Shown: positions 4,329 to 61,348 of the stretch, piece after piece
How positions within the stretch are numbered: the stretch's first letter is position 1
Layout: every line of letters starts with the position of its first letter
Assembly: GCF_052425735.1 (NCBI RefSeq)
Contig: NC_135769.1
Coordinates: 4,340,001 to 4,404,000 of the forward strand
DNA: 64,000 nt
Source: Oculina patagonica
Taxonomy: Eukaryota
Reading direction: 5' to 3'
Position numbers and translations under genes: made by a program
Notes under the pieces: generated by a model
Seen by the model: the letters and a program-made list of their open reading frames with translations, nothing else
Told to the model about the DNA's origin: nothing
The model's database searches: none

Positions 4329-5291
4329 CTATTTGCCGCATTTAAGCAGTCGTTTGGCGGCTTGTCGAAAATCCGCCCTGTAAAATGAATATATGAATGG
4401 ATTTACACACGACTGCAGAAGGAGAAAAAACATTGACAGTTTCACCAAAAGTGGTGTGACTAGGTCAGCTCGTCCAAACACATAGGCAAAGTTGTAGACG
4501 GAACGAGGTATCCATGACAACACAAATACCAAGACAACCGCAGCGCAAGCGATACTTCCTCTTCTTTTCCGTGAGGTTTCGGCTCGCGTTTCCTCGCAAG
4601 AAATTTCTTGATTTACAGAGCTAATTTCCCTCAAGGGAAACGTTTTTCGTCTCTGCGTTTGAATGGCACGAACGATCATGACGTTTACAAGAGCCATGAT
4701 CACTGCCGGTAGCATGACAAGGAGAAAAACTAAAATAACGTTGTAAACTTTGTTGATAGCTTTGGCCTTTTCCTCTGACTGAGTGTGCCACCATATGTTG
4801 CGCGCTGTCGCAATAAGGGCAGGAAAAACCCAAGTTAAGATGACCATGCAGGTCACCTTGTTCCTCGTCATTTTACTACTGTACTGTAAAGGACACAGAA
4901 CAGCCAGGTATCTGTCATACGTGATGGCCAACAAGCTGAAAAACGACGAACTGAAAACCAAGTCTTTAGTCTGTGCTAAGATCCAACACGTGTCGGAAGA
5001 GAGGTATGGCTTACACCCCGCGCAAAATGAGGTGTAACCCGGTACTACCATGACTGCCATCAAAATGTCGCTCACTGCCAAGCTGACAAGAAAAATGTTC
5101 ATGTATTGCTGTCGAAGCTGCTTTGTTGAGAGAAAGATCACACAAGTAAGCGTGTTTCCTGCCAAAATAATCAAAGCTAGGACCCCGTTGACAAACCAGA
5201 AGATTTTTTGTAATGTCTCATCACAATATGCTGTTTCGGTGCCAGTTGAGTTGGTATCCATGGAAGTGTCGTTTGACGAGAGATCCTTCAT
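4329..5291 (-). CDS. Class A orphan GPCR, cluster family member 1 (320 aa)
   Basis: Seven hydrophobic segments; GN (TM1), SLAVSD (TM2), YDRY, W4.50, SWIP, NPFIY and helix 8 FRQAA; uninterrupted ORF. Confidence 0.95.
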   Translation of the reverse strand: MKDLSSNDTSMDTNSTGTETAYCDETLQKIFWFVNGVLALIILAGNTLTCVIFLSTKQLRQQYMNIFLVSLAVSDILMAVMVVPGYTSFCAGCKPYLSSDTCWILAQTKDLVFSSSFFSLLAITYDRYLAVLCPLQYSSKMTRNKVTCMVILTWVFPALIATARNIWWHTQSEEKAKAINKVYNVILVFLLVMLPAVIMALVNVMIVRAIQTQRRKTFPLREISSVNQEISCEETRAETSRKRRGSIACAAVVLVFVLSWIPRSVYNFAYVFGRADLVTPLLVKLSMFFLLLQSCVNPFIYSFYRADFRQAAKRLLKCGK

Positions 5292-6870
5292 GTTTTATCT
5301 GGTTGAAGAGAAGCTTCCGTTGATGTAGTTTAGAAGGTTGATGTAGATATTGACCGTGACTGTGGTTCGAGCTTCTTTTATATTTTCCTTGTTGTATAAT
5401 TACCAGCTGTGTAGCCTTTGACGTTAGCGGATTTTCTTAATGGCCAATACCTGTCAAAATACATACAAATTCGGATAATTTCCCTTTATTCGGATTTTTA
5501 ATGAGATATCTACGTCGCCCTAGGGGAGCCAAATCATGGTTATTATCTCATGCACATTGTTCAATAATAAACGAGATTTTTATTCTCCTTTGTACAGAGT
5601 TGATCCTAGACGTGGCGGATCTGTGTATCCCCCCTTTTGCTATTGTTCCAAGCTGAAGTTAATCTTGTTTGTTAGGAAACCCCAGAGAATTGCTTGCCTG
5701 CGTAGGTAGTTGTTTGGCCTTCAGAAATGCGCACGCTAGCTAGCAAACTCTTTAAGGGAATTCCCTAAAAAATAGAGCAATTTTAGATTTTGTTATGGAT
5801 TTACCCAAAGAAACCATACAGACAGACCCACTGAAAAGCTCAGTAAACCACGAATTTCTTTTCGTCGTGTTGCGTGAATTCCTTTTTAGTTTGTATACCT
5901 CATGTTAAACTGACTAATTTCCCTGCTGTGTTCGGACGCCAGATTTGACTGGGCAATTCAATAACTGAAATTTATATTGGACTTTTATTTAAACGAAGGA
6001 AAAATTATTTTCTTAATATTGGTCACGCGAAAAGAACTGTTTGAAACTGATTTATAGTTATGGAAATCAGCAATCATTGTTGCGTTGAAATAAATGGCGT
6101 TCTAGAAAATACGTTTCATTGGCGCTTTTTTTTTTGTACGCTGAAAGATACAGGTTGCTTATCTTATAAGCGTCAAAAAAATCACCTACTGACTTTCCCG
6201 TAATGAGAATTAACGTCTTCATGGCATGGAACTAAATTACCAAATGAGAACCAATATATCATTCAAAACAAAGGTCAAGGATAATCTTTTTACATATTCT
6301 TGCCTGCAGGAATAAAACCTTATGGTAATTTTTGCCCCTGAAAGGTCAAAGCGGTGAAATACACTTAATCCTTTGTGATTTCTTGGCTGTAAATAGATCA
6401 TACATTTTTTGTATCTGTTTCGATACCCGTCTCATTTTGTCATTCTAGAAAAGAAACCGTTTTCGAGGGTAAACTGTCATTCAGTTTCGGCTTGTCTATT
6501 TAAAAATCGATTTCTGCTTGAAGTTCATACATAGAGATTTATTTCAGTTTTTATTATATTCTGGCCAAGAACTTCTAGAGATTTCTAGAAATTTCTAGAG
6601 CCGTGTTTTCCCATAAATATTGCTCAACATGTACAACTAAATAAAACTTCTGCTATCCAGAGAAAGCGTTTTTATTTTTAGTTTTTGACGCAAAAATAAA
6701 GATGAAAATGACAGGCTAAATTGTCCTGACAATTGTGCATTGTGGACTTTACCGTGCGTCAGATCGGAATTACGATTAATATTTACTCACAGGAAAAGAA
6801 GTCTAATTTTGGAATTCATGAACTGCATTCGATCTTTTAAGCTCTTTAACATTAACTTTGGGATATATTT

Positions 6871-6993
6871 ACTCACCTAAAATAAAGCCCGTGGGTGTTT
6901 TTGCAATTTTGAAATTCGTGTTAACGAGTTAACTCTTTGAAGTTTCTTGAAGTAGTCTCACTGACTATAACGAATCTGAGCTACTCTTTATAT
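6871..6993 (-). promoter_or_regulatory. Putative TATA + Inr core promoter and non-coding first exon of GPCR 1
   Basis: Minus strand: TATAAAG starting at 6992; TCAGT initiator with its A at 6962, 30 nt downstream; AG|GTGAGT donor at 6877/6876; candidate acceptor TTTTGACAG|G at 5451/5450. Confidence 0.55.
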
Positions 6994-8017
6994 TTTTTCG
7001 CGGTTGCTTAGGACTGAGCCAAGTCTGAGTGCAAGAAATCTACTAAAACGTCCTCTTTCCTGATGATAAAAAGGCATATTTGCTTAAGAATGATAAACAA
7101 GAACAGTTGAATAGATGGTTGACAGGAAAACGTAGCCGAAACAGGAAATTATAAACGCCGCTAATTGGACATGACGTTAGTAATGTTTTGATTTGAATCA
7201 ATGGAGGTGGCACAACTTGAAAACGGAATTTGTTGCGTGGGCTCCGGTCTTAAACATAATTTGGTTATTTAAATTAAAATATCACGTTTTCAAAGAGTTG
7301 TTTCTTAATTCTGTCACGACATTGTACAAAGCACAACAAAGAAATTGAACGCCCGATTCAGCAACTCTACGATTCAGTTCTGACGAAATTTGTCGAGTTT
7401 GGCATTAAGGTTTGAATAATTATTGTGCAGTTTTTAATATTGAAATAAAATTAAGAAACAAGGATTTCTTTTTGAACAAATAATTCTATTTTCGTTCTAA
7501 TTATACACGCTAAAAACTCCAAGGAAGCATTCTGTATGATAGCGAGATAAGTGCTTTATTTTTTTTGCCACGATAAGTTATTAAATAAAATTCTGTATTT
7601 TGAAAGCGTAAATGACGTCATTCGTTCTTTTATTAAAGTCAACTGAATGTGTGTAAGTAAGTGGAAATATTGAAAAAAGATGACAGAAACTCAACATGAA
7701 ATTGTACAATGTGCGCTTTGATGACGTCTGATGTGAAAGGTTTTTTACATTTCTAAGTATTACCTTTTATAGTACTCGATGAAAACGGGTTTATAGTTCA
7801 AATATGATTTTTAAACGTAAATAAGAATTCTCGATCGCCACAAGGTCTGAATTTAAAGCAAACGAAGCTTTCGATCCTCTATATCTCACCTTGAGACGAG
7901 AATTACTATTATTAAAATCAACCAAAGGTCAAGAATAAATATACATAGTCGTAAACTGAGGCTGTATTTTGACTCTTGCTAATTCCTAGAAAAATTATCC
8001 TTCAGATTGTTCCATGG

Positions 8018-8248
8018 CAGGGCCGTAACCAGACCTTTGCCATGGACGAGGCAAGATCTTGCTAGTGGGTTCTGGGGGCATGCCCTCCAGAAAATTTTGA
8101 AATCTAGAAGCTATAAATCTCTTTTAGAGACATTTTTCATGCAGTATTTTTTGATAAAAATCAATCTTGTTCAAATGAAGATTGATTTTTGGGTAAAAAC
8201 TTAGACGAGGCAAGTGCCTCGTCTTGCCTCTTGCTTGTTACGGCCCTT
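8018..8248. mobile_element. MITE with CAGGGCCGTAAC termini
   Basis: TIR CAGGGCCGTAAC...GTTACGGCCCTT, flanked on both sides by CATGG; the same 3' end recurs at 43761-43787. Confidence 0.7.
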
Positions 8249-8902
8249 CATGGAATTGCAATTTTTGTTTTTATTTCGATCAGTCTTTAAGCAGCTAGAC
8301 CACATTGAAATTTTGGTAGCCTTCAAATTCAAAATGTTATAAGCTGCTGATGTTAAAACAGGTCTAAAACAGGTGTTGAAACAAGTATAACACAGTAATT
8401 TTTGGCGATGACAAATTTTGGCGGGAGGAAACCTCGACAAGAAGCACGTATTCCTTATTATATTATTATATCTTATCGCTGTTTCTATTTCTGAACAACA
8501 AATATCTTAATTTTGCAGCCTTAAGTTTGGAATAGGCCTAATAATTGATGCTATTACTTTCGGCCAATGAAAAGTTGGATCACTTGGGATTGACCGACGT
8601 CACCGTCACGTGATCATCGATCTCAACTGAAGTGATTGATGTTTTCAGCAATACAATAAAACGTTTAAGCAATACTATGACGAAAACGCATCTAAAACGT
8701 CAATAAAACGACCAATCATGGCTTACGTTTTGAAAATATTACGTTAGGCTGTGATTACTTAAAAATGTTCAGAACATTTATTTCAAAACTAACATCTTCA
8801 ATGTATGTAATAAGCAGTGCGGTATTAAATAGTCACTGAAATCTGGTGAAAACGTACAATTGATGACCGTCAATAACTTCATGCGATAATACGGTATTGA
8901 AA

Positions 8903-9964
8903 ATGGAAAAAGTGTGGATTAATGACACCAAGTTGGCAAATCTCGTTGACTTTGGCGAAGATGATTCAAACACAAAGACAGATGGTCACTGCATCAGGAC
9001 AATCGAACTCGCTTTTTGGATCTTGTATTCTTTAGTCGGAATCACGATTTTTATTGGAAATAGCTTCACTTGTATCGTTTTTCTAACATCGAAACGCCTT
9101 CGAAAGAACTTTATGAATGTTTTCCTGGTCAGCTTAGCGTTCTGGGACGTCCTAATGGCGATTTTTGTTGTTCCTTTTTATGCTACATACTGTAGCCGCG
9201 GTTGCAAATATTCCCTTACTAAATACTGTTGGCTGTTTAGAAAAGCAAAAGATTGTGTTCTTATTGCGGTGACTTTTAACATCTGTGCAATCACATACGA
9301 CCGGTATTTAGCAGTGGTTCAACCGCTTCACTATGGCGCGAAAATGACCAAGCGGCGTGTCACCGCTATTTTGGCCGGAGTTTGGACGCTGCCCGCTGTG
9401 GTGGCGGGAATCAGGAGCGCTTGGCATCACACAAAGAAAAACGATGACTTGCGTTACGCCAACAAACTGTACGACACTATACTGGTGGTAGTTTTCGTCA
9501 TGTTTGCGATTTTTGTGCTGTTAGTTGTAAACGTGAAGATTATGAGAGCTATTAAGAAGCACAACGAAAGAGAACTCACTGAGCAAAGTAGAAGAACGGC
9601 TTGGAAATCCCGTATGGAGAAAACCAAGCGAAGAAAGGGCACAAGGGCCTGTATCTTAGTGGTCTTTGTTTTTATGATTTGCTGGCTTCCGAGGATTGTC
9701 TATAACTTTAGCTATATAATCAAACCTCCTGGATTAGCTAGCCCTTTGTTTCTTAGGCTTGCTTTCTTTTGCCTTTTCTTGCAGTCTTCTGCAAATCCTT
9801 TTATTTACTCATTCTACAGATCTGAGTTTAGGAGAGCGGCCTTGAGGCTTGTAAGATGGCGCAAATCCGGAAGTAGGATTTACCCATTTGCCGAATTACA
9901 ACTAAGTAAATCCAAAGAAACAAATGACCTCGCTCAATCCGAGGCTGAGTTAACGAAAATGTGA
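8903..9964 (+). CDS. Class A orphan GPCR, family member 2 (about 353 aa)
   Basis: 7TM; GN, SLAFWD, YDRY, CWLP, NPFIY. First ATG is at 8903; the track start at 8897 is TTG. Confidence 0.95.
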   Translation: MEKVWINDTKLANLVDFGEDDSNTKTDGHCIRTIELAFWILYSLVGITIFIGNSFTCIVFLTSKRLRKNFMNVFLVSLAFWDVLMAIFVVPFYATYCSRGCKYSLTKYCWLFRKAKDCVLIAVTFNICAITYDRYLAVVQPLHYGAKMTKRRVTAILAGVWTLPAVVAGIRSAWHHTKKNDDLRYANKLYDTILVVVFVMFAIFVLLVVNVKIMRAIKKHNERELTEQSRRTAWKSRMEKTKRRKGTRACILVVFVFMICWLPRIVYNFSYIIKPPGLASPLFLRLAFFCLFLQSSANPFIYSFYRSEFRRAALRLVRWRKSGSRIYPFAELQLSKSKETNDLAQSEAELTKM

Positions 9965-12117
9965 CGTTGAATTCATCGATTTAGAGAAGCGCCATAAATT
10001 TTACAGTCTGTGCTTATAGTGTTTTTTTTTTTTTCAGAAAAACAAATGTGAATTTGCAATGTAAATGTTTTGTCAAAAGGTTAACATTTAAAAGCATGCA
10101 AAATGTGACAGATATTTGTTGAAATATTTCATACAGTGAATGAATGATGTATGTATATGTCAGTAATAAATAACGGACTAATCTTTACAAAATCGCTTGC
10201 ATGTGTTGTTGTTTTAACATTTTCACAAAATTAAAGGAAGCCTCTCTTTCAGTATTTTAAAGGGGCCAACTGTCAACTAGTATACAGGGCTCCTCCGTAA
10301 AATATATATTTAATGCATTTAATGGATGGATGAAAGATTAAAAGTGATCCCCCATTTTTTTTCTCTTTTCTCTTTTGTTTTTTTGCTTTTTGGCACGGTC
10401 AACCGATGCTACCACCCTCTCCTATCTATTTTCTGTCAAAATTAGCTTTAAAATTTTCAAAGCAATGTGTTCCTTAGTCAAGTTCCCTTTTGACGAGAAT
10501 ACAAATCACCCTCGAGATATGTAAACTGAGAAGAACTCTATATATAGATTACCTGCTATTCTTAAAGAGTTTTCCAGAGAAAATGTGGATTTTTAATGTG
10601 AATGTTCTGCCAAAGAGTTAAAATTAAACAGAGCTTGCATTGCAAAACATGACAAATATTTGTCGACATGGCGGCAATCTATGAATGTTTGTACATATAT
10701 TTACAAAGAAGTAAGAAAATGATCTTGACGAAATAGCTTGTGTTCTCGTTTTAACTTTTTCGCAGAAGAAAGCCTTAATTCGTGATCAAGGGTTTTTATT
10801 AAATGTAGCCACGTATTAACTCCGTATGTTTAATTAACGGATGGGTGAAGGTGAAAAAATTCACTGAAACACAATACCTTTTTTGGCACGATCCTGGCCT
10901 GTTTGTTGCTTTTCAGAATCAACTTTAAAATTTTCACGGCAATATGCTCCTTAACCAAGTTTCTACTGGATGAGAAATAAGCTAAATGACCATCGGTGGT
11001 ATAAAGCCAATTTGCAACTGACAGGTTGACACTGATGCGAGAGAGTTCTTAACTGCGGGGGTTTTTTGTTTATCTCCTTCCCGCGCGGTCCAGATGTTGA
11101 GTGAACTAAATCGCGCAATCTGATTGGTGAATCGAACGCTCCAGGTTATTTCATCTGGACCGCTCGCTCACACAGGCTATTTTTGGGCAGCCTTTTTCCT
11201 TGTTTCTTTTTATTTTATTTTAACCACAAAATAACTCGGTCAATGCGTCCACTTTTAGACCTCACGCTCGCTCAATATCAGTCATTTTTCCCAACTGCAT
11301 AACCGGTGGTTAATGGGTTTTGGCCGGTTTTGGTTGGCATTTATTCATCCGCGAAATTAATGCCTGTTTGAAGTTTTCCGGAGCGGAAGAGAACAAAAAC
11401 AAGTAAACAAATAATGCTGTACGAGATGGCATAAATGTATCAAATAGGTTGTGCCGGCGAAGACAACTGAAAATTTTTTCAAATGCCCATTTATGAGTTC
11501 ACCAAGTGTTTTATATCTAAAACGTGATGGTTAATTTCTTACTGTGTTAAAACAGAATTGAACGAGCTTAGTCAATTTCACCTGCCATCTGTATTTACAT
11601 ACGATTATGGAAATGCCTGACTTTTGCTATGGGTATTAGTTAAGAGAAAGAAAGCTGTCAAAATATAATTTAAAAACAATATTTCTTTTTGATCACGAAA
11701 ACGTTTTAATGCACTCTATTTATTTACTCCTGGTCGGTTTTGTGGACCCGTATGTAAGATTTAACGCTTCGTTTAGCCATAGAACTTGCTGGAAGACATT
11801 ATTTTGGAGTTTGGTTGCTTTAATAAAAAGATTCAGTGCCCTATTGTTGGGTGGTTATTTGGTTTATGAATAATACAAAATTTGTCAGTATAACTAACAT
11901 GGCTCATAAAATACGTCCTAACTAGCAAAAGCTTATCTTTGCCTCAGTAAAGAAAAAATAAAGGTCCTATCTGTTAAAAATACATTAAATGATGTTTTTT
12001 GGTGTAGGCTTAAATAAAGCGTAGCTATTGCCTCGTTTATTTCATTTGAACCCTTTCAAAGGAAAAGCCGATGAAAATTAAAGTATATGATATAAGGCAG
12101 CGCAAAAAATTAAAATT

Positions 12118-13152
12118 CTATTTTTGCACAGTTTTGTACGAGGTCAGAAGAATATTTGGCTTGGCGTGGGTTTTCTCCGATCTTTCCACGGTTCCGGCAT
12201 CAGCTTGGATTTGAGCATTTTCTGAAAGAAAGGACAAAGTTCGAAGAGCCGATAACATTGACTCTGCTCTCTCGACGACAAGATGACATCTTAATAAACG
12301 ATATGCCGCTCGTCTGAACTCCGATCTGTAAAACCAATAAATCAACGGATTAACCGCGGATTGCACAAATAAAAACAGGAAGCATATTCGGAAGAACAAC
12401 GGACTTGCCAGCCCCGGGGGTTCAACAATAAAACTGAAATTGTAAACAGCGCGCGGAAGCCAGCAAATTACAAACACGAGAACTACTGTAACACATGCAA
12501 TGGTCCCTTTGCGTCCCTGAGACGACATTACCGTTACATTGTTTTGTAAGTCGCGTTTTTCTCGTTCAGCTTGTTTTCTTATCGCTCTCAAAATCTTCAA
12601 ATTTGTTCTCAGCATTAGAACAACCAGTAAAACAACAAAACCGAGCACAATTATGCTGTCGTAGAGTTTATTTGCAAAGCGAGGGTCTGCTCCACTGTGT
12701 TGCCAAAAGTTGCGAATTCCCGCCAAAATCATCGGCAAACACCACACGACAGCTAGCATGGCGGTAACTCTTTTCGAAGTTATTTTGGAGCTGTATTGAA
12801 GCGGTTTTAATACTGCAATGTAACGGTCGTAGGTGATGGCGTACAGATTTAGGGTTGTGCCGATTTTGACGCAGTCCTTCGCTCCTCTCATGAGCCAACA
12901 GTAACTACGAAAAGAGTACTCGCACCCACGGCCACAGTAAATGGCATAAAATGGAACAACGAGCACGGACATAAGTATGTCCCACACGGCGAGGCTGACG
13001 AGAAGGACATTCATCTTGCTTTGGCGAAGTTTCTCGGTGGTCAAAAACACAACACATGCGAAAAGATTACCAGTGAAGATTACAACGCCAATAACGCCGT
13101 ATAAAATGAAAAACAAGGTTTCTGTTGACGTATCGCAGGTGGTGTTTCCCAT
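12118..13152 (-). CDS. Class A orphan GPCR, family member 3 (344 aa)
   Basis: 7TM; GN, SLAVWD, YDRY, CWLP, NPLIY; most similar by eye to member 2 (shared PPGLASPL). Confidence 0.95.
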   Translation of the reverse strand: MGNTTCDTSTETLFFILYGVIGVVIFTGNLFACVVFLTTEKLRQSKMNVLLVSLAVWDILMSVLVVPFYAIYCGRGCEYSFRSYCWLMRGAKDCVKIGTTLNLYAITYDRYIAVLKPLQYSSKITSKRVTAMLAVVWCLPMILAGIRNFWQHSGADPRFANKLYDSIIVLGFVVLLVVLMLRTNLKILRAIRKQAEREKRDLQNNVTVMSSQGRKGTIACVTVVLVFVICWLPRAVYNFSFIVEPPGLASPLFFRICFLFLFVQSAVNPLIYWFYRSEFRRAAYRLLRCHLVVERAESMLSALRTLSFLSENAQIQADAGTVERSEKTHAKPNILLTSYKTVQK

Positions 13153-16017: not shown

Positions 16018-16049
<32 letters not shown>

Positions 16050-16406: not shown

Positions 16407-16442
<36 letters not shown>

Positions 16443-19701: not shown

Positions 19702-20682
19702 TTAAATATTGAGATCATTAAGCGACGTAGTGGCGACTCTTCTAGATCCTGTAAATTTACAACAAATTAAGGCAAGCCCAGCTTGCCTGAAATCCGATCT
19801 GCAAAACGAATAAATAAACGGGTTGGCAGAAGATTGCATAAATAGCAACAACCATGCAATCTTCACTAAAACATCACTGACTAAATCAGGCCTGCCGAGC
19901 ACGAAACTAAAATTGACAAAAGCTAATGGCAGCCAGCTAACGAGAAAAACGAACACGACTAAAACGCACGATATTGTTCCCTTCCTGGCTTTTGTTCTTT
20001 CAAATCTAGTGTCCTGTTCTGTTCTCGCTTCGCTCACGCTATTTCTTTCTTGGCGCACACGTTGATTTTGCCGTCGTATCGCTTTGATTATCTTTACATT
20101 AATCACAAGAATGACAAGAATAGGCAACAAGGCAAAGGCGAAGATCAATGTACTGTTGTAAATCTTGTCTATTTTTCGCGCCTCCTCTTCGGACTCTGTG
20201 TGAAGCCATACGTTACGTAAAAGAGCAACAATAGAACTTAAAACCCAGACCCCAACCAAAATAAAGCTGACGGTTCTCTTTGTCATATAGTTGTGGTAGT
20301 GTAAAGGACGTAGCACCGCCAGGAATCTGTCAAAAGATATCGCAGCTAAATTAAACACTGTTCCTCCAAAGGCAATGTCTTTTAGTCCAGCCATCAACCA
20401 GCAGTGCTTGGACAGATCATATTTGCAGCCGTTACAGAAAACGGCATATCCAGGAACAACAAAAACCGCCATCATAATATCAGCTACTGCCAAGCTAACT
20501 AAGAAAATGTTCATGTAGCTTCGTCGAAGCCTTTTCGTTGTGACGAAGACCAGGAAAGTAAAGAGGTTTCCCGCCAATATAACAATGCCCGCGCTGCCAT
20601 ACAGAATCCAGAAAACCATTTCCAAAGTCTCGTTGCAGAGAGGGGTGATTTGAGTTGGTTTACTAGTTTTAACCGCTTCCAT
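19702..20682 (-). CDS. Class A orphan GPCR, family member 4 (about 326 aa)
   Basis: 7TM; GN, SLAVAD, FDRF, SWLP, NPFIY. First ATG is at 20682 (MEAVK). Confidence 0.95.
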   Translation of the reverse strand: MEAVKTSKPTQITPLCNETLEMVFWILYGSAGIVILAGNLFTFLVFVTTKRLRRSYMNIFLVSLAVADIMMAVFVVPGYAVFCNGCKYDLSKHCWLMAGLKDIAFGGTVFNLAAISFDRFLAVLRPLHYHNYMTKRTVSFILVGVWVLSSIVALLRNVWLHTESEEEARKIDKIYNSTLIFAFALLPILVILVINVKIIKAIRRQNQRVRQERNSVSEARTEQDTRFERTKARKGTISCVLVVFVFLVSWLPLAFVNFSFVLGRPDLVSDVLVKIAWLLLFMQSSANPFIYSFCRSDFRQAGLALICCKFTGSRRVATTSLNDLNI

Positions 20683-23599: not shown

Positions 23600-24637
23600 T
23601 TATTTTGTTTTTCGGGATGAAACCATAATTACAGATATATTATCATCCGATGAGTTTTGACATCGCAGTAAACGAATGGCAGCTTGCCGAAACTCTACTC
23701 TGTAAAATGAGTAAATAAATGGGTTTAAAGACGATTGAAGAAACAGGAAAAACAAGGATAACTGGATTAGTATTGGACTGACTAAATCTGCACGGCGAAA
23801 CAGAAAGCAAAAATTGTAATAAATACGAGGAAGCCAGCATAAGATGTAAACTAACACTACTACAACACACGCTAAAGTGCCTTTCAGTTTTTTAACATTG
23901 TTTACTGCTATACGGCTGTTTCTTCTTGAAAAACTTAAACGCATATTGGTAGAATTGGCGGCCTGGATTCTTTGAACTTGTTTTTTGATAACGTACAGGA
24001 TCCTGAAGTTAATCACCAGTAATAAAAAGAAAGGGAATATGACAAAAATAAAGATAAGGATATTTGAGTAAATTCTGTCAATGTGCAATGCTTCGTCTTT
24101 AAATTTACTGTGCTGCCAGATATTTCTTACGCCGGTAACAAGAACTGGTATTCCCCAAACTGCTGTCAAAATTAAAGTCATTTTCTTCTTTGTCATACTA
24201 GAGGCATAACGTAGAGGGCTGAAGAAGGCTTCGTGTCGGTCGAGTGAAATAGTCAGCAAATTGAGTATATTTGCTCCAAATGTGACTCCCTTGAGCGCTC
24301 TGATCAGCCAGCAGTGCTGAGTCAGCGAATATTTACATCCCTGGCAAAATACGGAGTAAAAAGGCATAACCAGTGCACCCATACATATGTCTGAAATGGC
24401 CAAGCTCACTAGATAGATGTTCATGTAGCTGCGACGTAGATGGCGCGTTTTCAGGAACACCGCGCAAGCCAGGCTATTTCCCGCCAAAATGAGGGCAGCA
24501 AGGACGCCGTTTACGACCCAGAAGATCATATCTAATGTCAGGTTGCATGGCAGGCCCAAAAATCCTTTTGTTGCGTGAAATGATACGTTGGTAGCCGTCC
24601 CAACATGAGAGGTGTTCATGTTTATGTGACTGCTCAT
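23600..24637 (-). CDS. Class A orphan GPCR, family member 5 (345 aa)
   Basis: 7TM; GN, SLAISD, LDRH, CWLP, NPFIY; N-glycosylation sequons in the N-terminus. Confidence 0.95.
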   Translation of the reverse strand: MSSHINMNTSHVGTATNVSFHATKGFLGLPCNLTLDMIFWVVNGVLAALILAGNSLACAVFLKTRHLRRSYMNIYLVSLAISDICMGALVMPFYSVFCQGCKYSLTQHCWLIRALKGVTFGANILNLLTISLDRHEAFFSPLRYASSMTKKKMTLILTAVWGIPVLVTGVRNIWQHSKFKDEALHIDRIYSNILIFIFVIFPFFLLLVINFRILYVIKKQVQRIQAANSTNMRLSFSRRNSRIAVNNVKKLKGTLACVVVVLVYILCWLPRIYYNFCFLFRRADLVSPILIQLSLFFLFLQSSLNPFIYSFYRVEFRQAAIRLLRCQNSSDDNISVIMVSSRKTK

Positions 24638-41103: not shown

Positions 41104-42099
41104 ATGGCTGTGAATGAAAGCACGGATAGTTCCGCCCATCTGGAAAATCTTCGCTCGTTGTACATGAAGTTTGAACTCACCGAGGGAATCTGTCTTTCCA
41201 TAATGTCGGTGTTAACTGTATCCGCGAACATTTTACTCTTAATAGCAATATGGAAAGACCCCGAGAAAAGCTTTCGTTCGCCAACAACATATTTCTTAAT
41301 TGGGCTTGGAATAGCGGACCTTTTGACCGGCGCAACAACCGAACCATTTTTCGCAGTATTCTACATAATGCGTTATCTACGCGGACCCAAAAACATCCCT
41401 GCATTGATCTCTCGTCTGTACGACGTGGGACAATCAATTTCAACCGTGACCATAAGCTCCTCGTATTTGATAATCCTCGGTTTGTCGATATCGCAATATA
41501 TTGCCATTAAGTGGCCTCATAAGTATAAAGTTTTCATCACGAGAAATCGTGTTATTGTCAGCGTCTTGCTTAGCTGGCTGTACTTCATATGTTTCATACT
41601 GGTGCTGTCTTTTACCCCGAACATCGATACAGTTTTATTCCTGAAGGTAGACTTGGCATTGCACCCTGTGCTAATTTCATCCGTTTTGCTCATAACTTTG
41701 ATTTTACTGTACAGGGTCTTTACCAAGCAAGTGCAGCAGAGAAAATCTTTCCGAGACTCCGCGAAAACCGTAAAAGACGGCGCTAAAGGAAGAGCGGATA
41801 ATCTTCAACGGCAGTTTACCATCGTTACGTTTTACTTAGCCGCGGTTCTTCTAATCTCAGCTCTGCCTCACATTGCTGTTCAGTTTGTGTGGCTGTACGC
41901 GGATCTTCCCCTAGAGGGAGTGTATTATATTTTTATGGCTCTGCGGATTAGAGATTTGTTACTGTTCCTCAAGGTGGCGCTGGATGCTTTTATTTACGCT
42001 TGGAGATTGCCTGCTTATCGACAGGCGTTGAAAAAGTCGTTGAATTGTTCAAATATCACAGGAAAACCGCGATCAGAAACGGAAGAAATACAGTTGTGA
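41104..42099 (+). CDS. Atypical class A orphan GPCR (331 aa), not of the nine-member family
   Basis: 7TM; AN (TM1), GLGIAD (TM2), SQY in place of DRY, W4.50, SALP, DAFIY in place of NPxxY, helix 8 YRQAL. Confidence 0.9.
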   Translation: MAVNESTDSSAHLENLRSLYMKFELTEGICLSIMSVLTVSANILLLIAIWKDPEKSFRSPTTYFLIGLGIADLLTGATTEPFFAVFYIMRYLRGPKNIPALISRLYDVGQSISTVTISSSYLIILGLSISQYIAIKWPHKYKVFITRNRVIVSVLLSWLYFICFILVLSFTPNIDTVLFLKVDLALHPVLISSVLLITLILLYRVFTKQVQQRKSFRDSAKTVKDGAKGRADNLQRQFTIVTFYLAAVLLISALPHIAVQFVWLYADLPLEGVYYIFMALRIRDLLLFLKVALDAFIYAWRLPAYRQALKKSLNCSNITGKPRSETEEIQL

Positions 42100-44224: not shown

Positions 44225-45662
44225 ATGTCATCGCACGCGTGTCATTGCACGCGTGTCATTGCACGCGTGTCGTTGCACGCGTGTCCTTGCACGCGTGTCA
44301 TCGCACGCGTGTCATGGCACGCGTGTCATCGCACGCCTGTCATCGCACGCGTGTCATGGCACGCGTGTCATCGCACGCGTGTCATCGCACGCGTGTCATG
44401 GCACGCGTGTCATGGCACGCGTGTCATGGCACGCGTGTCATCGCACGCGTGTCATGGCACGCGTGTCATCGCACGCGTGTCATCGCACGCGTGTCATGGC
44501 ACGCGTGTCATCGCACGCGTGTCATGGCACGCGTGTCATGGCACGCGTGTCATGGCACGCGTGTCATGGCACGCGTGTCATCGCACGCGTGTCATGGCAC
44601 GCGTGTCATCGCACGCGTGTCATCGCACGCGTGTCATCGCACGCGTGTCATGGCACGCGTGTCATCGCACGCGTGTCATCGCACGCGTGTCATGGCACGC
44701 GTGTCATGGCACGCGTGTCATGGCACGCGTGTCATGGCACGCGTGCGATGACACGCGTGCCATGACACGCGTGCCATGACACGCGTGCCATGACACGCGT
44801 GGATGACACGCGTGCCATGACACGCGTGCAATGACACGCGTGCCATGACAGCGTCGGTGACACGCGTGAATGACACGCGTGCGATGACACGCGTGTGATG
44901 ACAGCGTGCCATGACACGCGTAAATGACACGCGTGCATGACACGCGTGCCATGACACGCGTGCGATGACACGCGTGCGATGACACGCGTGCCATGACACG
45001 CGTGCAATGACACGCGTGCGATGACACGCGTGCGATGACACGCGTGTCATCGCACGCGTGTCATTGCACGCGTGTCATCGCACGCGTGTCATCGCACGCG
45101 TGTCATCGCACGCGTGTCATCGCACGCGTGTCATCGCACGCGTGTCATGGCACGCGTGTCATTGCACGCGTGTCATGGCACGCGTGTCATTGTACGCGTG
45201 TCATGGCACGCGTGTCATGGCACGCGTGTCATCGCACGCGTGTCATTGCACGCGTGTCACCGCACGCGTGTCATGGCACGCGTGTCATTGCACGCGTGTC
45301 ATGGCACGCGTGTCATGGCACGCGTGTCATCGCACGCATGTCATCGCACGCGTGTCATGGCACGTGTCATCGCACGCGTGTCATCGCACGCGTGTCATGG
45401 CACGCGTGTCATCGCACGCGTGTCATGGCACGCGTGTTATGGCACGCGTGTCATGGCACGCGTGTCATGGCACGCGTGTCATGGCACGCGTGTCATCGCA
45501 CGCGTGTCATCGCACGCGTTTCATGGCACGCGTGTCATCGCACGCGTGTCATCGCACGCGTGTCGTGGCACGCGTGTCATGGCACGCGTGTCATCGCACG
45601 CGTGTCATGGCACGCGTGTCATCGCACGCGTGTCATTGCATGCGTCGTGTCATGGCACGTGT
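44225..45662. repeat. 14-bp CpG-rich satellite GTCAT(G/C/T)GCACGCGT with an internal inverted block
   Basis: About 100 tandem units; orientation is reversed between about 44745 and 45040. Confidence 0.97.
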
Positions 45663-47261
45663 TTGAACAATTAAGAGGCAACATGTTAACTAGTGGTAAC
45701 CACAGGTTAGAAAGTGCGGGCCTCGATGCAGTTAAGAGAAGTTACTGGGAGGGAAGTGTTTCAGACAGTGTCGATAAATCACTGGACAAAAGAAAATTTT
45801 TCCGAGTCAGGTCGAGTAACGCGTCACGCTTAAGTCACGAATGTTTTTTATCGTTTCCTATTGCCGCGAACCAATTAGAGTTGTTTTTTTGATTGACAGT
45901 TTTGCGAAATATAGTCGAGCACGCGGTGTGAATTGAGATGTGATTTTCGTCCGTCGGCAAACTCGCTTTGTTGTCAGTGTTATAAGGAATTTCTCGAGAA
46001 TAACCGTTGGAATCATTCGCTTTGCCGTAGTTTATCTGTGATATAATCACAGCAGATCTTCTCAAAAGCAACACCTATAAAACAACGAACGTAAAACGTA
46101 ATGTCTGCAAGACAGAAGCCTCGATCTAATGTGACAAACTGTTGATTTTTCGCATTCTTATCGCTCTTGGAGACAAGATTTTTCTCTTCCGGTATTACGA
46201 CAAACTGTCGTGATTGACACATTTTTTGCATTCCGATCGTTCTTAGTGGAAGAACAAAATTTTCAACTTCAGGTTTGCAGATAGCCTTTATAAACGTGGC
46301 GCGCACGCGTAATACGCAATCCGCTGGTCACTGTCAAGATTAGGGTTGCGGGCCTCTCTTGGGCCCGCAACAACAAAATTGAAAGGTTTCGCCATTTAAC
46401 CATGTGTAGATTTTTAATCCAACTCTTCCCTCTCTTTAGCTCTTTTCCAACTTAAACCTGCTTATGTGTTCCACCCCTCACCCTCCCATTCCACTATTTC
46501 CACTATCATGGGTAGTGCATCTGAACAGTGAGGATCCCATCCCTTCTACTGCCCTCTCCTACCCTAACCATTTTCCATCGCATTTTCCTCTCCTCGTCGC
46601 TTAGGTAGTGGTGTCGGCCGAGTGGAGGTGTGGGGGTGAGTAACTGTGCGGCAAAAACGAAAAAAAGAATTTGAACTAATTAAGAACTGTTATCGTAAAA
46701 TAATATCGCGGAATAAGCTGTCTTAATCAAAGGCTCCTTGAGTTGTCTTGTGTACTGAACAGAGTCTTCATCTCTGCATTGTCTGCATGCGCCGCGCTTG
46801 GGTCTCTTGAGGCGTTAAAATAATAATTTAACTGCAGCACGTTAACCGCCCGCCAGAACATGAATCCTTTCGATTTGTAGTAAAAAGTATGGATACCTTA
46901 ATAGAACTACCCCCTCTGTATTTTGTGGCAAATAAATGCTTGGTCGGTTGTTGTTAAATGCCCAGACATAAAGCATATAAAATGTATCAGAAGGTAAGAA
47001 ATCTTGCTTCTTGTTTGCTTCTCGGTCTTACAACCTTTATTCATATTGATTAAGCACACAGAATAGGACTTGACGCGACTTAGCTGAGTGCTCTCATGAC
47101 GTCATAAAATAGCTTCAGTGCACTCTTTCACGCACGTTCCCACGCTCCCTCTTTAACCCACGCGTCCACAAACACTCGCTCACTTGCCAATGCACGCACG
47201 CTTGCTCTCTCGCTCGCTCGCTCGCCTACTTATTCACCTGTTCAGTTTGTTACAATTACAT

Positions 47262-47854: not shown

Positions 47855-48802
47855 TTAGAATCTATTACATGACAGCAATTTAACAGCAGCACGTCGGAGG
47901 TCAGCTCTGTAAAACGAATAGATAAGTGGGTTAACAGATGACTGCACGATGAAGAGAAATATCGACATCTTCTGCAGTAGTATATTAACCCGTCCTCCGC
48001 TTATCAGATACTGGACGTTGAATGAGACTCGTGGAATCCACGACACCACAAACACTATCACAACAAGGGCGCAAGCCAATGTCCCCTTTCGTGTTCGAGC
48101 AACTTCTGCTTGAGTCTCTGGGTTTACAGCTTCGTCTGCCGCATTCTGAGGATGTCCGAGGGCGAAGACCTGACGCACCTGCTGTCGGATGGTCAATATG
48201 ATCTTGATATTTACCACAGAAATTATCGTGGATGGTATCAGGAGAACTACCAGCAGAAGTATGTTATTGTACAGGCCATTAAGCGCGATTAATTCAGCTC
48301 CAGTTGTTGTGTGTTGCCAAAAATTGCGGATTGAAGCGATGGTTAAGGACGCGCTCCAGACCATGATCATGATAAAGAAAGCTCTACGTCTAGTCATTAC
48401 GTCGGAGTAACGAAGGGGTCTGTAGACTGCCAAAGCGCGATCATAAGAAATTGTAAGCAAATTGTAGATACTCGAAGCGAGAGCGATGTCTTTCGAACCT
48501 TTGAAGAACCAACAGTGCTTGCTTAGCGCGTACTCGAAACAGCCAACGCAGAACAGCGAATAACCCGGAACGACGCACGAAGCCATTATGATGTCGGTGA
48601 CAGCCAGCGACGCGATAAATAGGTTCATCGGTTGCTGTCGAAGTCGGGGACTCGTTGCTATGGACAGGAACACCAGAACGTTGCCAAGGAGGATGACGGC
48701 GCCTACGGTAAGGTTGAGAACCATGAATGTTGTCTCGATGGACTGATCGCAGGATGAGGGTTCGGTTATGTTTGTTGCCGGTACTGAATTGCTCGTTGAC
48801 AT
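47855..48802 (-). CDS. Class A orphan GPCR, family member 7 (315 aa)
   Basis: 7TM; GN, SLAVTD, YDRA, SWIP, NPLIY. Confidence 0.95.
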   Translation of the reverse strand: MSTSNSVPATNITEPSSCDQSIETTFMVLNLTVGAVILLGNVLVFLSIATSPRLRQQPMNLFIASLAVTDIIMASCVVPGYSLFCVGCFEYALSKHCWFFKGSKDIALASSIYNLLTISYDRALAVYRPLRYSDVMTRRRAFFIMIMVWSASLTIASIRNFWQHTTTGAELIALNGLYNNILLLVVLLIPSTIISVVNIKIILTIRQQVRQVFALGHPQNAADEAVNPETQAEVARTRKGTLACALVVIVFVVSWIPRVSFNVQYLISGGRVNILLQKMSIFLFIVQSSVNPLIYSFYRADLRRAAVKLLSCNRF

Positions 48803-54587: not shown

Positions 54588-55634
54588 ATGAATTCCTCGA
54601 TTTCGGGCTTGGCTCCAGAAAACTTTACTTTAATACCAGGCCAAACTTTGCAGCCGCAAAATGAATCTGATTACAAGACATCATATTGCGACCATCGACT
54701 TGATGTGGTGTTTTGGGTGGTCAATGGCATAATCGGTGTGGTTATCTTACTAGGGAACAGTTTTACATGCGCTGTATTCTTATCCAACTCTTACTTGAGA
54801 CGGAATTACATGAATATCTATCTGATAAGCCTTTCTATGGCCGATATTTCAATGGCAGTGTTAGTGGTGCCGGGTTTTGCCGCATTTTGTAGTGGTTGCA
54901 CTTATAAATGGAGCGAGTACTGCTGGTTTTTCGGAGGCGCGCGAGACATTGCGTTTCCTGCTACCGTCCTCAATCTACTGGCCATCACCTATGATAGATA
55001 CACAGCCGTTATAAGACCGTTGCATTACGCAGCGACGATGACAAATCGCAAGGTTTTCACCATTCTTCTAGCTGTCTGGTTGACACCGCTAATCGTTTCG
55101 TCCCTGAGAAATATTTGGCATCATTCGTGGAGCGAAGAAGCGGTCAAAAACGCTGAAACAGTTTACAACGCAGTACTGGCTACAATGTTTGCGTTGTCGC
55201 CACTCCCTGTGTTGCTAATAGTGAACCTTAAGATTATGAGAGCTATAAAGAACCATGGACAGCGAATTCACGCAGATATGGTAGAGCGAATGTCTTTCAC
55301 GAATCACACGGACAGAGGATTTTCCACCCGGCAAATCGATAAAGAATTCGGCAGTAGTGCTGCAATAAACGAACAAAATCGCAGAAATACTTCACGAAGG
55401 AGAAAAGGAACCATGTCCTGTGTTTTTGTTGTTTTGATTTTTATTATTTCTTGGCTTCCGAGAGCTTATCTGAATTTGTGCAGCCTTTTCGGCCGACAAG
55501 ACTTAACGAGCCCATTGCTCGTAAAACTTTCTTTGTTTTTTCTCTTTTTCCAGTCTTCGGTCAACCCTGTAATTTATTCTTTTTTTAGAAATGATTTTCG
55601 CCAAGCGGCCCGCCGATTAATTAAACGGCACTAA
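54588..55634 (+). CDS. Class A orphan GPCR, family member 8 (348 aa)
   Basis: 7TM; GN, SLSMAD, YDRY, SWLP, NPVIY; longest ICL3. Confidence 0.95.
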   Translation: MNSSISGLAPENFTLIPGQTLQPQNESDYKTSYCDHRLDVVFWVVNGIIGVVILLGNSFTCAVFLSNSYLRRNYMNIYLISLSMADISMAVLVVPGFAAFCSGCTYKWSEYCWFFGGARDIAFPATVLNLLAITYDRYTAVIRPLHYAATMTNRKVFTILLAVWLTPLIVSSLRNIWHHSWSEEAVKNAETVYNAVLATMFALSPLPVLLIVNLKIMRAIKNHGQRIHADMVERMSFTNHTDRGFSTRQIDKEFGSSAAINEQNRRNTSRRRKGTMSCVFVVLIFIISWLPRAYLNLCSLFGRQDLTSPLLVKLSLFFLFFQSSVNPVIYSFFRNDFRQAARRLIKRH

Positions 55635-58239: not shown

Positions 58240-60358
58240 GGGGCTGCATTAAACCAATTACTGGAGAAATAGTTACAAAGCAATTGGTGATTTTCAAAAG
58301 TCTTCTCCGGGGAAACTTGGTGGGTCTTCGATTATTCCAGCTACTATTATCTGCTGCGTTTAATAACTTTAACCACCATTCGGATATCATCATGAAAAAA
58401 TATATATCAATTTTTAATTACACTTGTTTTCATTTGTTTATATACTGTTCTTATTATGCGTTTTAAAGTGCCGATCTCTGGAAAGAGTTAATCACTTAAA
58501 TGGGAGTTTCATATTAGATTTCTGTTTTCAAAATATAAGGCGTTTACGCAGCTCTGACGGACTAGAGAGCCCAAAGAAGATATCCATTGAATGCTTAGTG
58601 TTTTTTGTAAATGCAGCTTTGCGATTATTTCTCTGGCCTGTATTCAGTTTGTCTTTTGTTGTCAGATTATCCTTAAACAGAATCGGCCTATCAGGCGAGT
58701 TTGTTCGAGCTATGGTTCGTATTTGGCGAAAAGCAGTCAATCAAAAATACCCATGGCGGGACCAAACGAGCCTGATTTGCCGCCGAGGCGAAATACGATT
58801 GGGTATTTGCCGTTCCCAAGTTCAGCTTAACCTCAGCAAAGGACTTGATATATATCGCAGGAAATCGATCAGGACAGTATACAAGGCTTCCGATTGGCTT
58901 ATTGCGACTTTAGGCACGATAACAGGCTCACGTTTAATTTGGGTCACATTCACGAGCCTTTTCGCTCGCGGACTCAAGCCCGCGGCCTTGCGATCGCGAG
59001 AGTGACCCAAATGTGGCTGCTAGAACTAAAGAGAACTGAAGATAGTAATTCCCCTCTTACTCTATAAAAAGGAGAATTATTTCACTGTCAAGACTGTCAA
59101 TAGAATTAAGTTGCAAGAATCATGAACCGTGGCCGTGGCTTGTATGACGCAGCGTTTCGTCCCAGCCAAGGGACTTTTCAGATACTTAGCTTTCCTGAAG
59201 GAGTCAAGGTTGACTAGGCGCAACAAATGCTATTTTTTTTCTCCTAATCCCTCGATCCGCAACTATTTTCGTTTAATCCGAATGCGCATTACTTGAAAGT
59301 TCCTGTTGTATAGTTTCACTGCAACGACTGTAGTTGTTAATTTTTTTAAACCGATTGTTTAAGAAGTTTCCTATTATCGATCGCTATTTTATATGAATGT
59401 TAAGTTACAGAATTATGTTAAACATTAATATAATCCCTAAACGAAGTTCCCATGATCCGAACCTCAGGCAGACAGAGCCTGGAATCCAGGCCAAATTTCT
59501 CAGCTGATCTTGGTTACGCCGTACGACGGTAGTTTCGAAATCCACGAATCCGCTCAATTTATGTCAAAGGTCCGCATCCCTGCGCGTTTTAATGCCAAAT
59601 TTGTCCATCCGCGAACCTATTCATCCCCCCCCCCCCCCCTTGAAGAGACGTCCCTTTGCCGAGAGGAGACGCAGCGAAACACTAGCCATGATTTACGAAT
59701 TCGCTTATATTTAATTTGGTCCGTTTCGTGTTGTTGTTCAGGACTGAAGTGCTCCAAATACCAGGCACGGGATATCAACTCTAACCCAGTCCCTACTTAT
59801 TACAAATAAGTCGAGAAGGCATGGGCCTTGAAGGATGATCAAGGGCGCGTGTAGTCTTGGGAGGAATGATTACTGGTTTGCAATAAACTCGCGCTTTAAC
59901 AGAAAGCGATCTACAAAACACGTGGTGCGAATTTATACGCGTGTACGCGTGTGCACGTGGCACGATTTTATACACCTGTTCGGACAGACCTAAGCAAGTT
60001 TTTTATAAGTTTGTAAAAAAACGGAAGTTTCGAAATTAAAACTGCGCCGTGTCAAATCAATCATTTGTTAAAGCTTCAGCGCCTTTGAGAATAAGCCAAC
60101 CATTTAATTTACTTCTCACCCGTAATGCATCTGTTATTTACACTGGCAACACTAAACGTGACTTAAAACAACTGCTGAAAAAATAACATCGAGCTCCTAA
60201 GTGCTTTAATTAGGCAGCTTTATCCGCTGCAATATAACTTTTCCTGCAAATTGATTTAGTACATGCAAGGTAAATTAAATGAATCGTACTCTAGGCAGTC
60301 AGTTTTGTTTAAGCTAGCTCACAGTACGTGCAGAATTTGGATCTTTGTAAGCTCAGCT

Positions 60359-61348
60359 ATGTCGAACATTTCTCAGTTAAATAATTCAAATCGTATGCTA
60401 TCTAGCCCTCCAAAACTTCCCGTCTTCCAACCCGATGTTGATGAAATTAACGACGATGAAAACTGCAGCAGAGAGCTGGATTTTCTCTTCTGGATTATAA
60501 ACGGCGTCATCGGAGCTTTCATTCTGCTGGGAAACACTCTAACATGTGCAGCTTTTCTACGCTTTGAGAATCTCCGACGTAGCTGCATGAATGTTCTTTT
60601 GCTCAGCCTGGCCATTTGTGATGTTCTTATGGGGGTGACAGTAACGCCTGGCTACGCTGCATTCTGCACTGGCTGCACATACGGCTTCAGTAAGCTCTGC
60701 TGGCTTTTCGAAGGCGGGAAAGATGTCTGCTTTCTGAACTCCACGTTTAATCTTCTAGCGATCTCCTATGACAGGCAGCTAGCCATTTTTCAGCCGCTGA
60801 AATATCAGGCCAAGATGTCGCGAAGGAAAATTCGCTGGATTTTGACCGCAGTTTGGATCGTGCCTGTGTGTCTTGCCGCTGTAAGAAACATTTGGTCTCA
60901 CAACCAACCGGCGAATGTCGTCGAAGAGTGGAACAGGACCTATTCATACATTTTACTGTGTGTTTTTGTGATAGTCCCCATTATCACTGTCAGCGTTATC
61001 AATGTCGCAATTTTCTGCGCCATTAGAAAACAAAGACGAAAAATAACAGGTTTCGACTACAACAATTATAAATACTGGTGGAAAAAGAAGAATCGTATGC
61101 AATATATTCAACTGCGAAAGGGCACGCTTTCATGCGTTTTAGTAGTTATCGCATTTGTAGTTTGCTGGCTTCCTAGAGCTTTTTATTACTTCTTTTATTT
61201 GTTCGGCCGTCCCGAGTTAGTTACGCCGTTTCTGCGTAAAATTTCGGTGACTTTTCTGCTGTTTCAATCTTCGACAAATCCTTTTATTTACTCTTTTTAC
61301 AGAAGGGAGTTCCGACAAGCTGTCAGAATTTTAATTAAATGTCAGTAG
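60359..61348 (+). CDS. Class A orphan GPCR, family member 9 (329 aa from 60359; in-frame upstream ATG at 60263)
   Basis: 7TM; GN, SLAICD, YDRQ, CWLP, NPFIY; start codon ambiguous. Confidence 0.93.
   Translation: MSNISQLNNSNRMLSSPPKLPVFQPDVDEINDDENCSRELDFLFWIINGVIGAFILLGNTLTCAAFLRFENLRRSCMNVLLLSLAICDVLMGVTVTPGYAAFCTGCTYGFSKLCWLFEGGKDVCFLNSTFNLLAISYDRQLAIFQPLKYQAKMSRRKIRWILTAVWIVPVCLAAVRNIWSHNQPANVVEEWNRTYSYILLCVFVIVPIITVSVINVAIFCAIRKQRRKITGFDYNNYKYWWKKKNRMQYIQLRKGTLSCVLVVIAFVVCWLPRAFYYFFYLFGRPELVTPFLRKISVTFLLFQSSTNPFIYSFYRREFRQAVRILIKCQ

Follow-up and report, generated by a model that had tools for sequence, protein, structure and literature searches.

The 64,000-nucleotide stretch of the coral Oculina patagonica analysed here (contig NC_135769.1, positions 4,340,001 to 4,404,000; hereafter the window) carries, between its positions 4329 and 61348, nine intact single-exon open reading frames (ORFs) of 315-364 amino acids (aa) on both strands, which encode G-protein-coupled receptors (GPCRs) of one family, with a common set of charged residues in and around the predicted ligand pocket. 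The DNA is AT-rich (GC content about 0.37-0.40) and free of N bases. All nine ORFs match the Pfam family 7tm_1 (PF00001) with E-values of 4e-32 to 4e-41 (112-142 bits, the cut-off being 30.5), and the other members are 39-46% identical to the first one (m1). The class-A motifs N1.50, D2.50, D/ERY, W4.50, P5.50, CWxP and NPxxY are invariant or nearly so in the family alignments, DRY being represented by DRH in m5 and by DRQ in m9. By every feature tested, the nine genes encode class-A (rhodopsin-type) GPCRs. TTG was listed as the start of three ORFs, for which the first ATG was used instead (m2 at 8903, m4 at 20682 and m6 at 28613), and the true start of m9 may be an internal methionine, residue 33 of its ORF.

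Residues were numbered by counting from R3.50, W4.50, P6.50 and P7.50, and each codon was verified on the DNA. The alignment of the nine members from C3.25 to R3.50 has no insertions or deletions, and none of the anchors W4.50, P6.50 and P7.50 varies among them. Position 3.32 is basic in all nine (Lys in eight, Arg in m8), and so is 4.60 (Arg in eight, Lys in m6). Asp is found at 3.33 in all members except m5 (Gly), Arg at 6.51 in all except m4 (Leu) and Asn at 6.55 in all except m9 (Tyr), while 7.36 is occupied by Lys or Arg in eight members and by Gln in m5. At codon level these counts agree exactly with a preliminary description of the locus, which had read them as a charge-reversed, cationic pocket for anionic ligands.

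A six-frame search of the whole genome (an assembly of 529 Mb, the window lying on a contig of 33.5 Mb) with the profile of the nine members revealed eleven family genes at 367-499 bits; every other GPCR reached 166 bits at most, and the family is therefore sharply bounded. One of the additional genes is located 9 kb upstream of the window, so that the array is ten genes long and the number nine is an effect of the window edge; the other one (m10) is located on another chromosome-scale contig. Relatives were gathered from two very large protein collections, giving 61 family sequences with less than 75% mutual identity, in which a base is kept at 3.32 in 97%, at 4.60 in 98%, at 6.51 in 93% and at 7.36 in 88%, and an acid at 3.33 in 89%. 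Gln7.45 is invariant in the family. Asp or Glu at 1.32, present in 89% of the 61 sequences, is the only conserved acid of the outer half besides D3.33. As an outgroup, the 75 nearest full-length non-family representatives and the ten next-best paralogues of the same genome were used. Lys or Arg was found in only 1, 4, 0 and 7 of the 75 sequences at 3.32, 4.60, 6.51 and 7.36, respectively, and a combination of at least two of the four basic sites exists in just one of them; the prevailing states are instead D3.32 (35/75), P4.60 (41/75), F/Y/L6.51 and N7.45 (67/75). None of the ten paralogues (0/10) has the pattern. In a maximum-likelihood tree, all 60 family sequences lie beyond one long branch (length 0.67, support of 100 in the Shimodaira-Hasegawa-like approximate likelihood ratio test). 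Because of this conservation, the outgroup contrast and the tree, the signature can be regarded as a derived character of one clade. Judged from the sequences, the family is a single clade and its basic sites are a clade signature beyond chance.

The best public matches to m1 come from the stony corals Orbicella, Stylophora and Montipora (86%, 83% and 69% identity), and the named members of the family belong to Scleractinia (Orbicella, Stylophora, Pocillopora, Montipora) and Actiniaria (Nematostella, Exaiptasia, Actinostola). No named member was found beyond stony corals and sea anemones, although most of the matches are nameless, so that absence from octocorals or medusozoans is not implied. 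According to the tree, the m6 clade of corals has Nematostella EDO36053 and an Exaiptasia protein as its sister, while Nematostella P0053 and Actinostola P0063 fall with the m8 clade. This nesting of anemone sequences among coral paralogues indicates that several paralogues are older than the split between anemones and corals. The tandem arrangement is likewise old, as Nematostella has a tandem pair on the same strand, 5.5 kb apart, of EDO36054, which is m9-like with the Y6.55 motif, and EDO36053, which is m6-like with a long third loop. A long tandem-repeat ORF sits between these two genes (L013:4764-6436). The third intracellular loop reaches 150-450 residues in P0110, P0114, P0115, P0117, P0119, P0121 and P0122 (total length 451-785 aa), of which only Nematostella EDO36053 (P0117) is a named one; all members in the window are short-looped. 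Across genera, the sequences of the m1 orthogroup are 71-95% identical, and the long-term conservation of intact ORFs across genera is an independent argument for function.

Transcription of m1 and m2 was approached with the contigs of four sequencing runs, which were compared with positions 4300-10000. Run contigs cover 4300-5452, that is m1 with about 160 nt before its ATG, and about 8797-9947 (m2). Over m1, one run (X1) is colinear with the genome, with one mismatch in 1153 nt and zero joints. Apart from a repeat between the two genes, the intergenic DNA of this region is little covered; the X1 contigs over m2 (8797-9947) likewise leave it bare. Such ORF-restricted coverage is the pattern of unspliced transcripts, and the genes are apparently transcribed; that the runs derive from RNA is, for its part, a guess, as none of the recorded runs bears an RNA label, which counts against this conclusion. 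The repeat itself reaches a depth in the thousands in many contigs of all four runs, with varied flanks and internal deletions, and is probably a very abundant interspersed coral repeat, similar to a short interspersed nuclear element (SINE) or a miniature inverted-repeat transposable element (MITE).

Table 1. Genes of the receptor family and other features of the locus (positions of the window, unless another sequence is named)
Feature	Position	Strand	Length	Residues	Remarks
m1	4329-5291	-	320 aa	K109(3.32) D110 R164(4.60) R263(6.51) N267 K284(7.36)	7tm_1 E 1.9e-37, codons checked
m2	8903-9964	+	353 aa	R3.29 K3.32 D3.33 R4.60 D5.39 R6.51 N6.55 R7.36	from first ATG
m3	12118-13152	-	344 aa	R3.29 K3.32 D3.33 K3.36 R4.60 D5.39 R6.51 N6.55 R7.36	
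m4	19702-20682	-	326 aa	K3.32 D3.33 R4.60 L6.51 N6.55 D7.32 K7.36 W7.39	from first ATG
m5	23600-24637	-	345 aa	R3.29 K3.32 G3.33 R4.60 R6.51 N6.55 Q7.36	DRH replaces DRY
m6	28613-29707	+	364 aa	D3.29 K3.32 D3.33 K4.60 D5.39 R6.51 N6.55 E7.35 K7.36	from first ATG
m7	47855-48802	-	315 aa	K3.29 K3.32 D3.33 R4.60 R6.51 N6.55 K7.36	
m8	54588-55634	+	348 aa	R3.32 D3.33 R4.60 R6.51 N6.55 K7.36	
m9	60263-61348	+	361 aa (ORF)	E3.29 K3.32 D3.33 R4.60 R6.51 Y6.55 R7.35 K7.36	
Tenth array gene	L001:449-1411 = G000:C12:4330672-4331598	+		R3.32 D3.33 R4.60 K6.51 N6.55 R7.36	9 kb upstream of the window
Eleventh gene (m10)	L002:541-1509 = G000:C5:33240440-33241354	-		R3.32 Y3.33 R4.60 R6.51 N6.55 K7.36	other chromosome-scale contig
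Interspersed repeat	8017-8250				between m1 and m2
First 9/19-bp unit array	31692-32188				
Broken GPCR copy	32636-33213	-	100 aa and 143 aa		ORF pieces 32911-33213 and 32636-33067
Second 9/19-bp unit array	36463-36960				
Other intact GPCR ORF	41104-42099	+	331 aa		7tm_1 E 5e-14
14-bp satellite	44226-45659				
Repeat ORF	45035-45892		285 aa		spurious

Besides the nine genes, the window contains a tenth intact GPCR ORF inside the array, with a weak 7tm_1 match. It lies outside the family, does not show the signature and did not appear at family level in the genome search. Overlapping ORF pieces in different frames copy the N- and C-terminal parts of this gene, the middle (about transmembrane helix (TM) 3 to TM6) being gone, and the tail resembles the end of m6 (…EIKLQEM); this looks like a broken, internally deleted copy and not like an intact chimeric receptor. 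On either side of it, in opposite orientation, are two arrays of a 9/19-bp unit (ATCTTTTGG and its reverse complement), with about 26 copies of the 19-mer each. A satellite of 14 bp, TGTCATGGCACGCG, is present in about 103 copies with 92% matches, raises the local GC content up to 0.50 and produces a spurious repeat ORF.

The nearest relatives of the family among characterised receptors are those for amines and adenosine. The family profile matched the solved chains of the H2, D1, beta-1, alpha-2, D2/D3, muscarinic, 5-HT4 and A2A receptors (E-values of 4e-42 to 1e-31). For m1, an AlphaFold2 model computed from 63 sequences of the family shows seven helices and helix 8 (mean predicted local distance difference test score 88.9, predicted template-modelling score 0.85), and its best structural matches are the beta-1, H2, D1, TAAR1, octopamine and A2A receptors (template-modelling scores of 0.7-0.8 at 20-26% identity). 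A look-up in the ESM Atlas gave generic amine-receptor-like clusters only. With the Gs-coupled aminergic receptors (H2, beta-1, D1, TAAR1), its best matches in both sequence (profile E-values of 4e-42 to 1e-36) and fold (21-26% identity), the family has D2.50, DRY, CWxP and NPxxY in common, and with the beta receptors also N6.55. It differs from them, however, in K/R for D3.32, R for F6.51, L for S5.42, Q for N7.45 and R/K for P4.60, and also in the second extracellular loop (ECL2), which comprises only about two residues and forms no disulfide with C3.25. As the defining D3.32, the aromatic residue at 6.51 and the ECL2 disulfide are all missing, these are not aminergic receptors. Adenosine receptors (A2A, A1) resemble the family in N6.55 (8/9 members) and in extra cysteines of the first extracellular loop (ECL1). 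A2A has a long ECL2 with Phe and Glu ligand contacts, hydrophobic residues at 3.32, 3.33 and 6.51 and His7.43, and its N6.55 hydrogen-bonds adenine; the family, in contrast, lacks a long ECL2, has L/F7.43 and is charged at 3.32, 3.33 and 6.51. Database names given automatically to members, such as 'adenosine receptor A2a-like' and 'alpha-2B adrenergic receptor-like', are similarity labels only, and misleading ones.

In the model of m1, TM4 runs to residue 170 and TM5 begins at residue 173, leaving about two non-helical residues for ECL2. A turn of two residues cannot cap the cavity, which would thus be without a lid. Since the segment from TM4 to TM5 contains no Cys in any of the nine members, the canonical disulfide between 3.25 and ECL2 cannot form. 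Four conserved cysteines, one just ahead of TM1, two in a motif of TM2 and ECL1 and C3.25 itself, presumably link both the N-terminus and ECL1 with TM3.

The orientation of the charged side chains was judged from published cavity sets and from depth arguments. A set of 28 cavity-facing class-A positions includes 3.32, 3.33, 6.51, 6.55 and 7.45 (PMC3162937). Position 6.51 is one residue past P6.50 and three past the W6.48 switch, at about mid-depth of the bilayer, and 3.32 is about two turns beneath the extracellular end of TM3. Since an Arg or Lys facing lipid at such depth would carry a large penalty, K/R3.32 and R6.51 probably point into the cavity, and by general class-A geometry they should do so from opposite walls; that they face lipid, as the preliminary description had considered, is accordingly improbable for these two. 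Positions 4.60 and 7.36 are at interface depth, where the sequence is compatible with either orientation. Within the 28-position set, the net charge is +1 in m1, m2, m8 and m9, +2 in m3 and m7, +3 in m5, 0 in m4 and -2 in m6. When 4.60 and 7.36 are added, it becomes +3, +3, +4, +2, +4, 0, +4, +3 and +3 for m1 to m9.

On these grounds, the chance that the ligand of the family is anionic or zwitterionic is put at about even. The bases that are fixed in the clade, two of them at positions of the cavity set, argue for it. The following points weigh against it. The cavity set excludes 4.60 and 7.36 (PMC3162937), and leaving them out lowers the net charge to about +1, and to 0 in m4 and -2 in m6. 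D3.33 could pair with K3.32, R4.60 or R6.51, and D/E1.32 with K7.36. Of the known anion-sensing class-A receptors in the sets compared (PMC3162937), none binds its anion via 3.32 or 6.51. Finally, there is no statistical sign that a variable remainder around a conserved anchor diversified the ligands: orthogroup-specific residues showed no enrichment at cavity positions (Mann-Whitney p = 0.67; 0.94 for the outer helix half). The preliminary interpretation is therefore plausible, partly supported and somewhat overstated. Its anionic ligand agrees with the bases at 3.32 and 6.51, while those at 4.60 and 7.36 stand outside the set. Its charge reversal is real in so far as K/R takes the place of the Asp3.32 of amine receptors; the pocket is, nevertheless, bipolar, with K3.32 beside D3.33, and zwitterions would be no worse suited to it than pure anions. 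As the charges of the 28-position set imply, the term cationic suits the majority of members only on condition that 4.60 and 7.36 are turned towards the cavity, and it does not suit m6, which is neutral to acidic.

The same acids could indicate that the charges serve the receptor itself, forming an internal network (D3.33 with R4.60 or R6.51, D/E1.32 with K7.36, perhaps with an inorganic anion) which lends stability to an extracellular half without a lid or determines constitutive activity, and which would say little about the ligand. The conserved acids D3.33 and D/E1.32 (89% each) do share one half of the bundle with the four bases, R4.60 stands where a helix-shaping Pro is found in 41/75 outgroup sequences, and the pocket core is conserved like the structural core, with no paralogue-specific excess. 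However, four bases stand against two acids and, since these are the only conserved outer acids, no counter-charge of their own is available to K3.32 and R6.51 apart from D3.33. The bases also outlast the acids. The acid at 3.33 was lost in 14 family sequences of three lineages, having F (P0026-P0032, P0038), Y (m10/P0059/P0061) or G (m5/P0118) instead, and a base was kept in 14/14 of them at 3.32 and in 13/14 at both 4.60 and 6.51; similarly, where 1.32 is Q or K, K/R7.36 was kept in 22/24. In the subclade of P0114 and P0122, 6.51 is H/Y and 6.55 is Lys, so that the positive charge sits a turn further on the same side of TM6. Such a move is hard to reconcile with a fixed salt bridge and would be expected if a cavity-facing positive charge on TM6 is selected. 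Base persistence and charge move, though few independent events, appear to fit a selected cavity charge better than fixed salt bridges. Covariation analysis revealed no coupling of D3.33 or D/E1.32 with the bases, few sequences being informative. The internal network is, overall, quite unlikely as the main explanation, and neutralisation by D3.33, also foreseen in the preliminary description, could concern one base at most. A conserved acidic pair in ECL2, seen by eye in the nine members, was considered as another counter-charge and rejected, as no ECL2 column reaches 60% acidic residues family-wide. A Schiff-base lysine at 3.32 was ruled out too, Arg taking the place of Lys in about a quarter of the family.

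D3.33 might have yet another role, that of the Asp3.32 of amine receptors, which would make the genes amine receptors with a shifted anchor. Its conservation (89%) and the amine receptors as nearest relatives speak for this explanation, and there is a precedent in teleosts, since some fish olfactory TAARs are reported to recognise amines through a non-classical Asp (PMC4695389). Two to four cationic side chains should, however, repel a protonated amine. D3.33 was lost in at least three lineages that retain all else, and the aromatic cage of 6.51/6.52 and the serines of TM5 are missing, so a shifted amine anchor is considered very improbable.

For an acidic ligand, the closest functional analogy is provided by the lysophospholipid receptors; it is one of mechanism, and not of kinship, as this clade was not among the best sequence or structure matches of the family. 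In LPA1, K7.36 and R3.28 salt-bridge the phosphate, D3.33 is near the ligand, and 3.25 is Trp instead of Cys (bioRxiv 10.64898/2025.12.09.693124); in S1P receptors, the adjacent TM3 pair R3.28/E3.29 reads the phosphate and ammonium of S1P (PMC514652). The family has K7.36 and D3.33 in common with LPA1, both lacking the usual 3.25 disulfide, and an adjacent pair of base and acid on TM3 in common with S1P1 and S1P4. Its TM3 pair is, however, one turn deeper (3.32/3.33 versus 3.28/3.29), and LPA1 has Gly where the family has R6.51. The head-group pair of LPA1-3 and S1P1-5, R3.28 with Q/E3.29, was not found in the family, in which 3.28 is L/F/M/I and 3.29 is variable. In FFAR1, P2Y11, P2Y13 and the prostacyclin receptor, cavity Arg, Lys or His residues bind the acidic ligand through contacts at 3.29, 5.39, 6.55, 7.35, 7.39 and 7.40 (PMC3162937). 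These receptors belong to another branch of class A. The family has a base at 3.29 only in m2, m3, m5 and m7 and at 7.35 only in m9, with N/D/S at 5.39 and N/Y at 6.55. Because the known bases are at 3.29, 5.39, 6.55, 7.35 and 7.39, a clamp formed by 3.32 and 6.51 would be a new solution.

The open vestibule left by the very short ECL2 of the model, together with the bases, would also suit neuropeptide receptors, in which the cavity takes a cnidarian peptide and the partners of the bases are its backbone carbonyls, its acidic side chains or a free C-terminus instead of a small anion. As the neuropeptides known from cnidarians are mostly amidated and in many cases basic, they would suit a pocket of +3 to +4 poorly. 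Ligand binding by K3.32 in GnRHR and by 4.60 in the V1a receptor (PMC3162937) gives some support to a peptide ligand. The screen of Thiel et al. (eLife 2024, PMC11087051), in which 161 Nematostella GPCRs were tested with 64 peptides, leaves room for it as well, as the signature strings of the family are absent from the list of the 161 tested receptors, in which receptor sequences can be searched, although other motif spellings might escape a string search. In the file of all GPCRs of the same study, however, members bear the suffix _MAR (GPR169 = EDO36053, GPR182 = EDO36056), and the family falls in the amine/adenosine-like part and not in the peptide clusters; its best solved or Swiss-Prot matches (H2, beta-1, D1, TAAR1 and A2A) point in the same direction. 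A peptide ligand is therefore regarded as unlikely. Neither a known ligand nor an earlier description of the signature was found in the literature, and the clade is not treated in a placozoan monoamine receptor preprint (2025) or in the Pocillopora receptome paper. The clade and its pocket signature thus appear to be orphan and undescribed, the genes themselves being already present in databases.

To return to an anionic or zwitterionic ligand, the scenario regarded as most likely is that the subfamily split from the amine/adenosine-like part of class A and that its orthosteric site was then rebuilt, with K/R for Asp3.32, Asp at 3.33, Arg for the aromatic 6.51, Arg/Lys for Pro4.60, K/R7.36 and Gln for Asn7.45. 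The agonist would carry an acidic group, such as a carboxylate, a phosphate or a sulfate/sulfonate, which might be clamped between K/R3.32 and R6.51 on either side of the cavity, close above the W6.48 switch. A counter-charge and hydrogen bonds for a second polar or cationic group would come from D3.33 and N6.55, which makes an amino-acid-like zwitterion as likely as a pure anion, and R4.60 and K7.36 may enlarge the anion site, as K7.36 does in LPA1.

L6.51, D7.32 and W7.39 of m4 are all fixed in five coral orthologues (P0035, P0041, P0042, P0044, P0105), and G3.33, Q7.36 and DRH of m5 recur in the orthologue P0118. The deviations of m4 and m5 are hence fixed states of old paralogues, which fits the shifted specificity proposed for these two members in the preliminary description. 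The same may apply to m6 and m9. The charge-balanced pattern of m6, with four acids (D3.29, D3.33, D5.39, E7.35) against four bases, holds in its orthogroup of 27 sequences, while m9 has R7.35 and Y6.55, the latter fixed as Y/F in the orthologues P0048, P0106, P0051, P0055 and P0056. Strong differences between paralogues were observed only at 7.39, which ranks first of all helix positions, 3.29, 7.35 and 6.52. All paralogues have a common cavity core of F1.35, I1.46, V2.57, C2.65, K/R3.32, D3.33, Y5.38, L5.42, F6.44, W6.48, R6.51, N6.55 and Q7.45, which suggests closely related ligands and not unrelated chemistries.

Acidic compounds are also among the external cues of cnidarians: sugars of the N-acetylneuraminic acid type tune the discharge of anemone stinging cells, and glutathione and amino acids trigger feeding. 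It is conceivable, although distinctly improbable at present, that the subfamily of corals and anemones represents the missing G-protein-coupled chemoreceptors for such cues. Candidate ligands would be N-acetylneuraminic-acid-type sugars, glutathione or amino acids, nucleotides and sulfated metabolites of algae or symbionts, the last of which could be relevant to coral settlement and symbiosis; the clamp could then have arisen independently of the bilaterian receptors for carboxylates, nucleotides and lipid phosphates.

Most cnidarian class-A GPCRs are orphans, and the sole large screen used peptides on peptide-like receptors. For this small family, with eleven genes here and a handful in the laboratory model Nematostella, a concrete deorphanisation hypothesis can be offered, in which acids and zwitterions are to be tried first. 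If amines or amidated peptides activate the receptors instead, the charge of the pocket would turn out to predict the class of ligand poorly in distant lineages. If the hypothesis is true, the family would represent a third, independent way to build an anion site in class A, and could provide receptors for metabolites or cues of corals and anemones.

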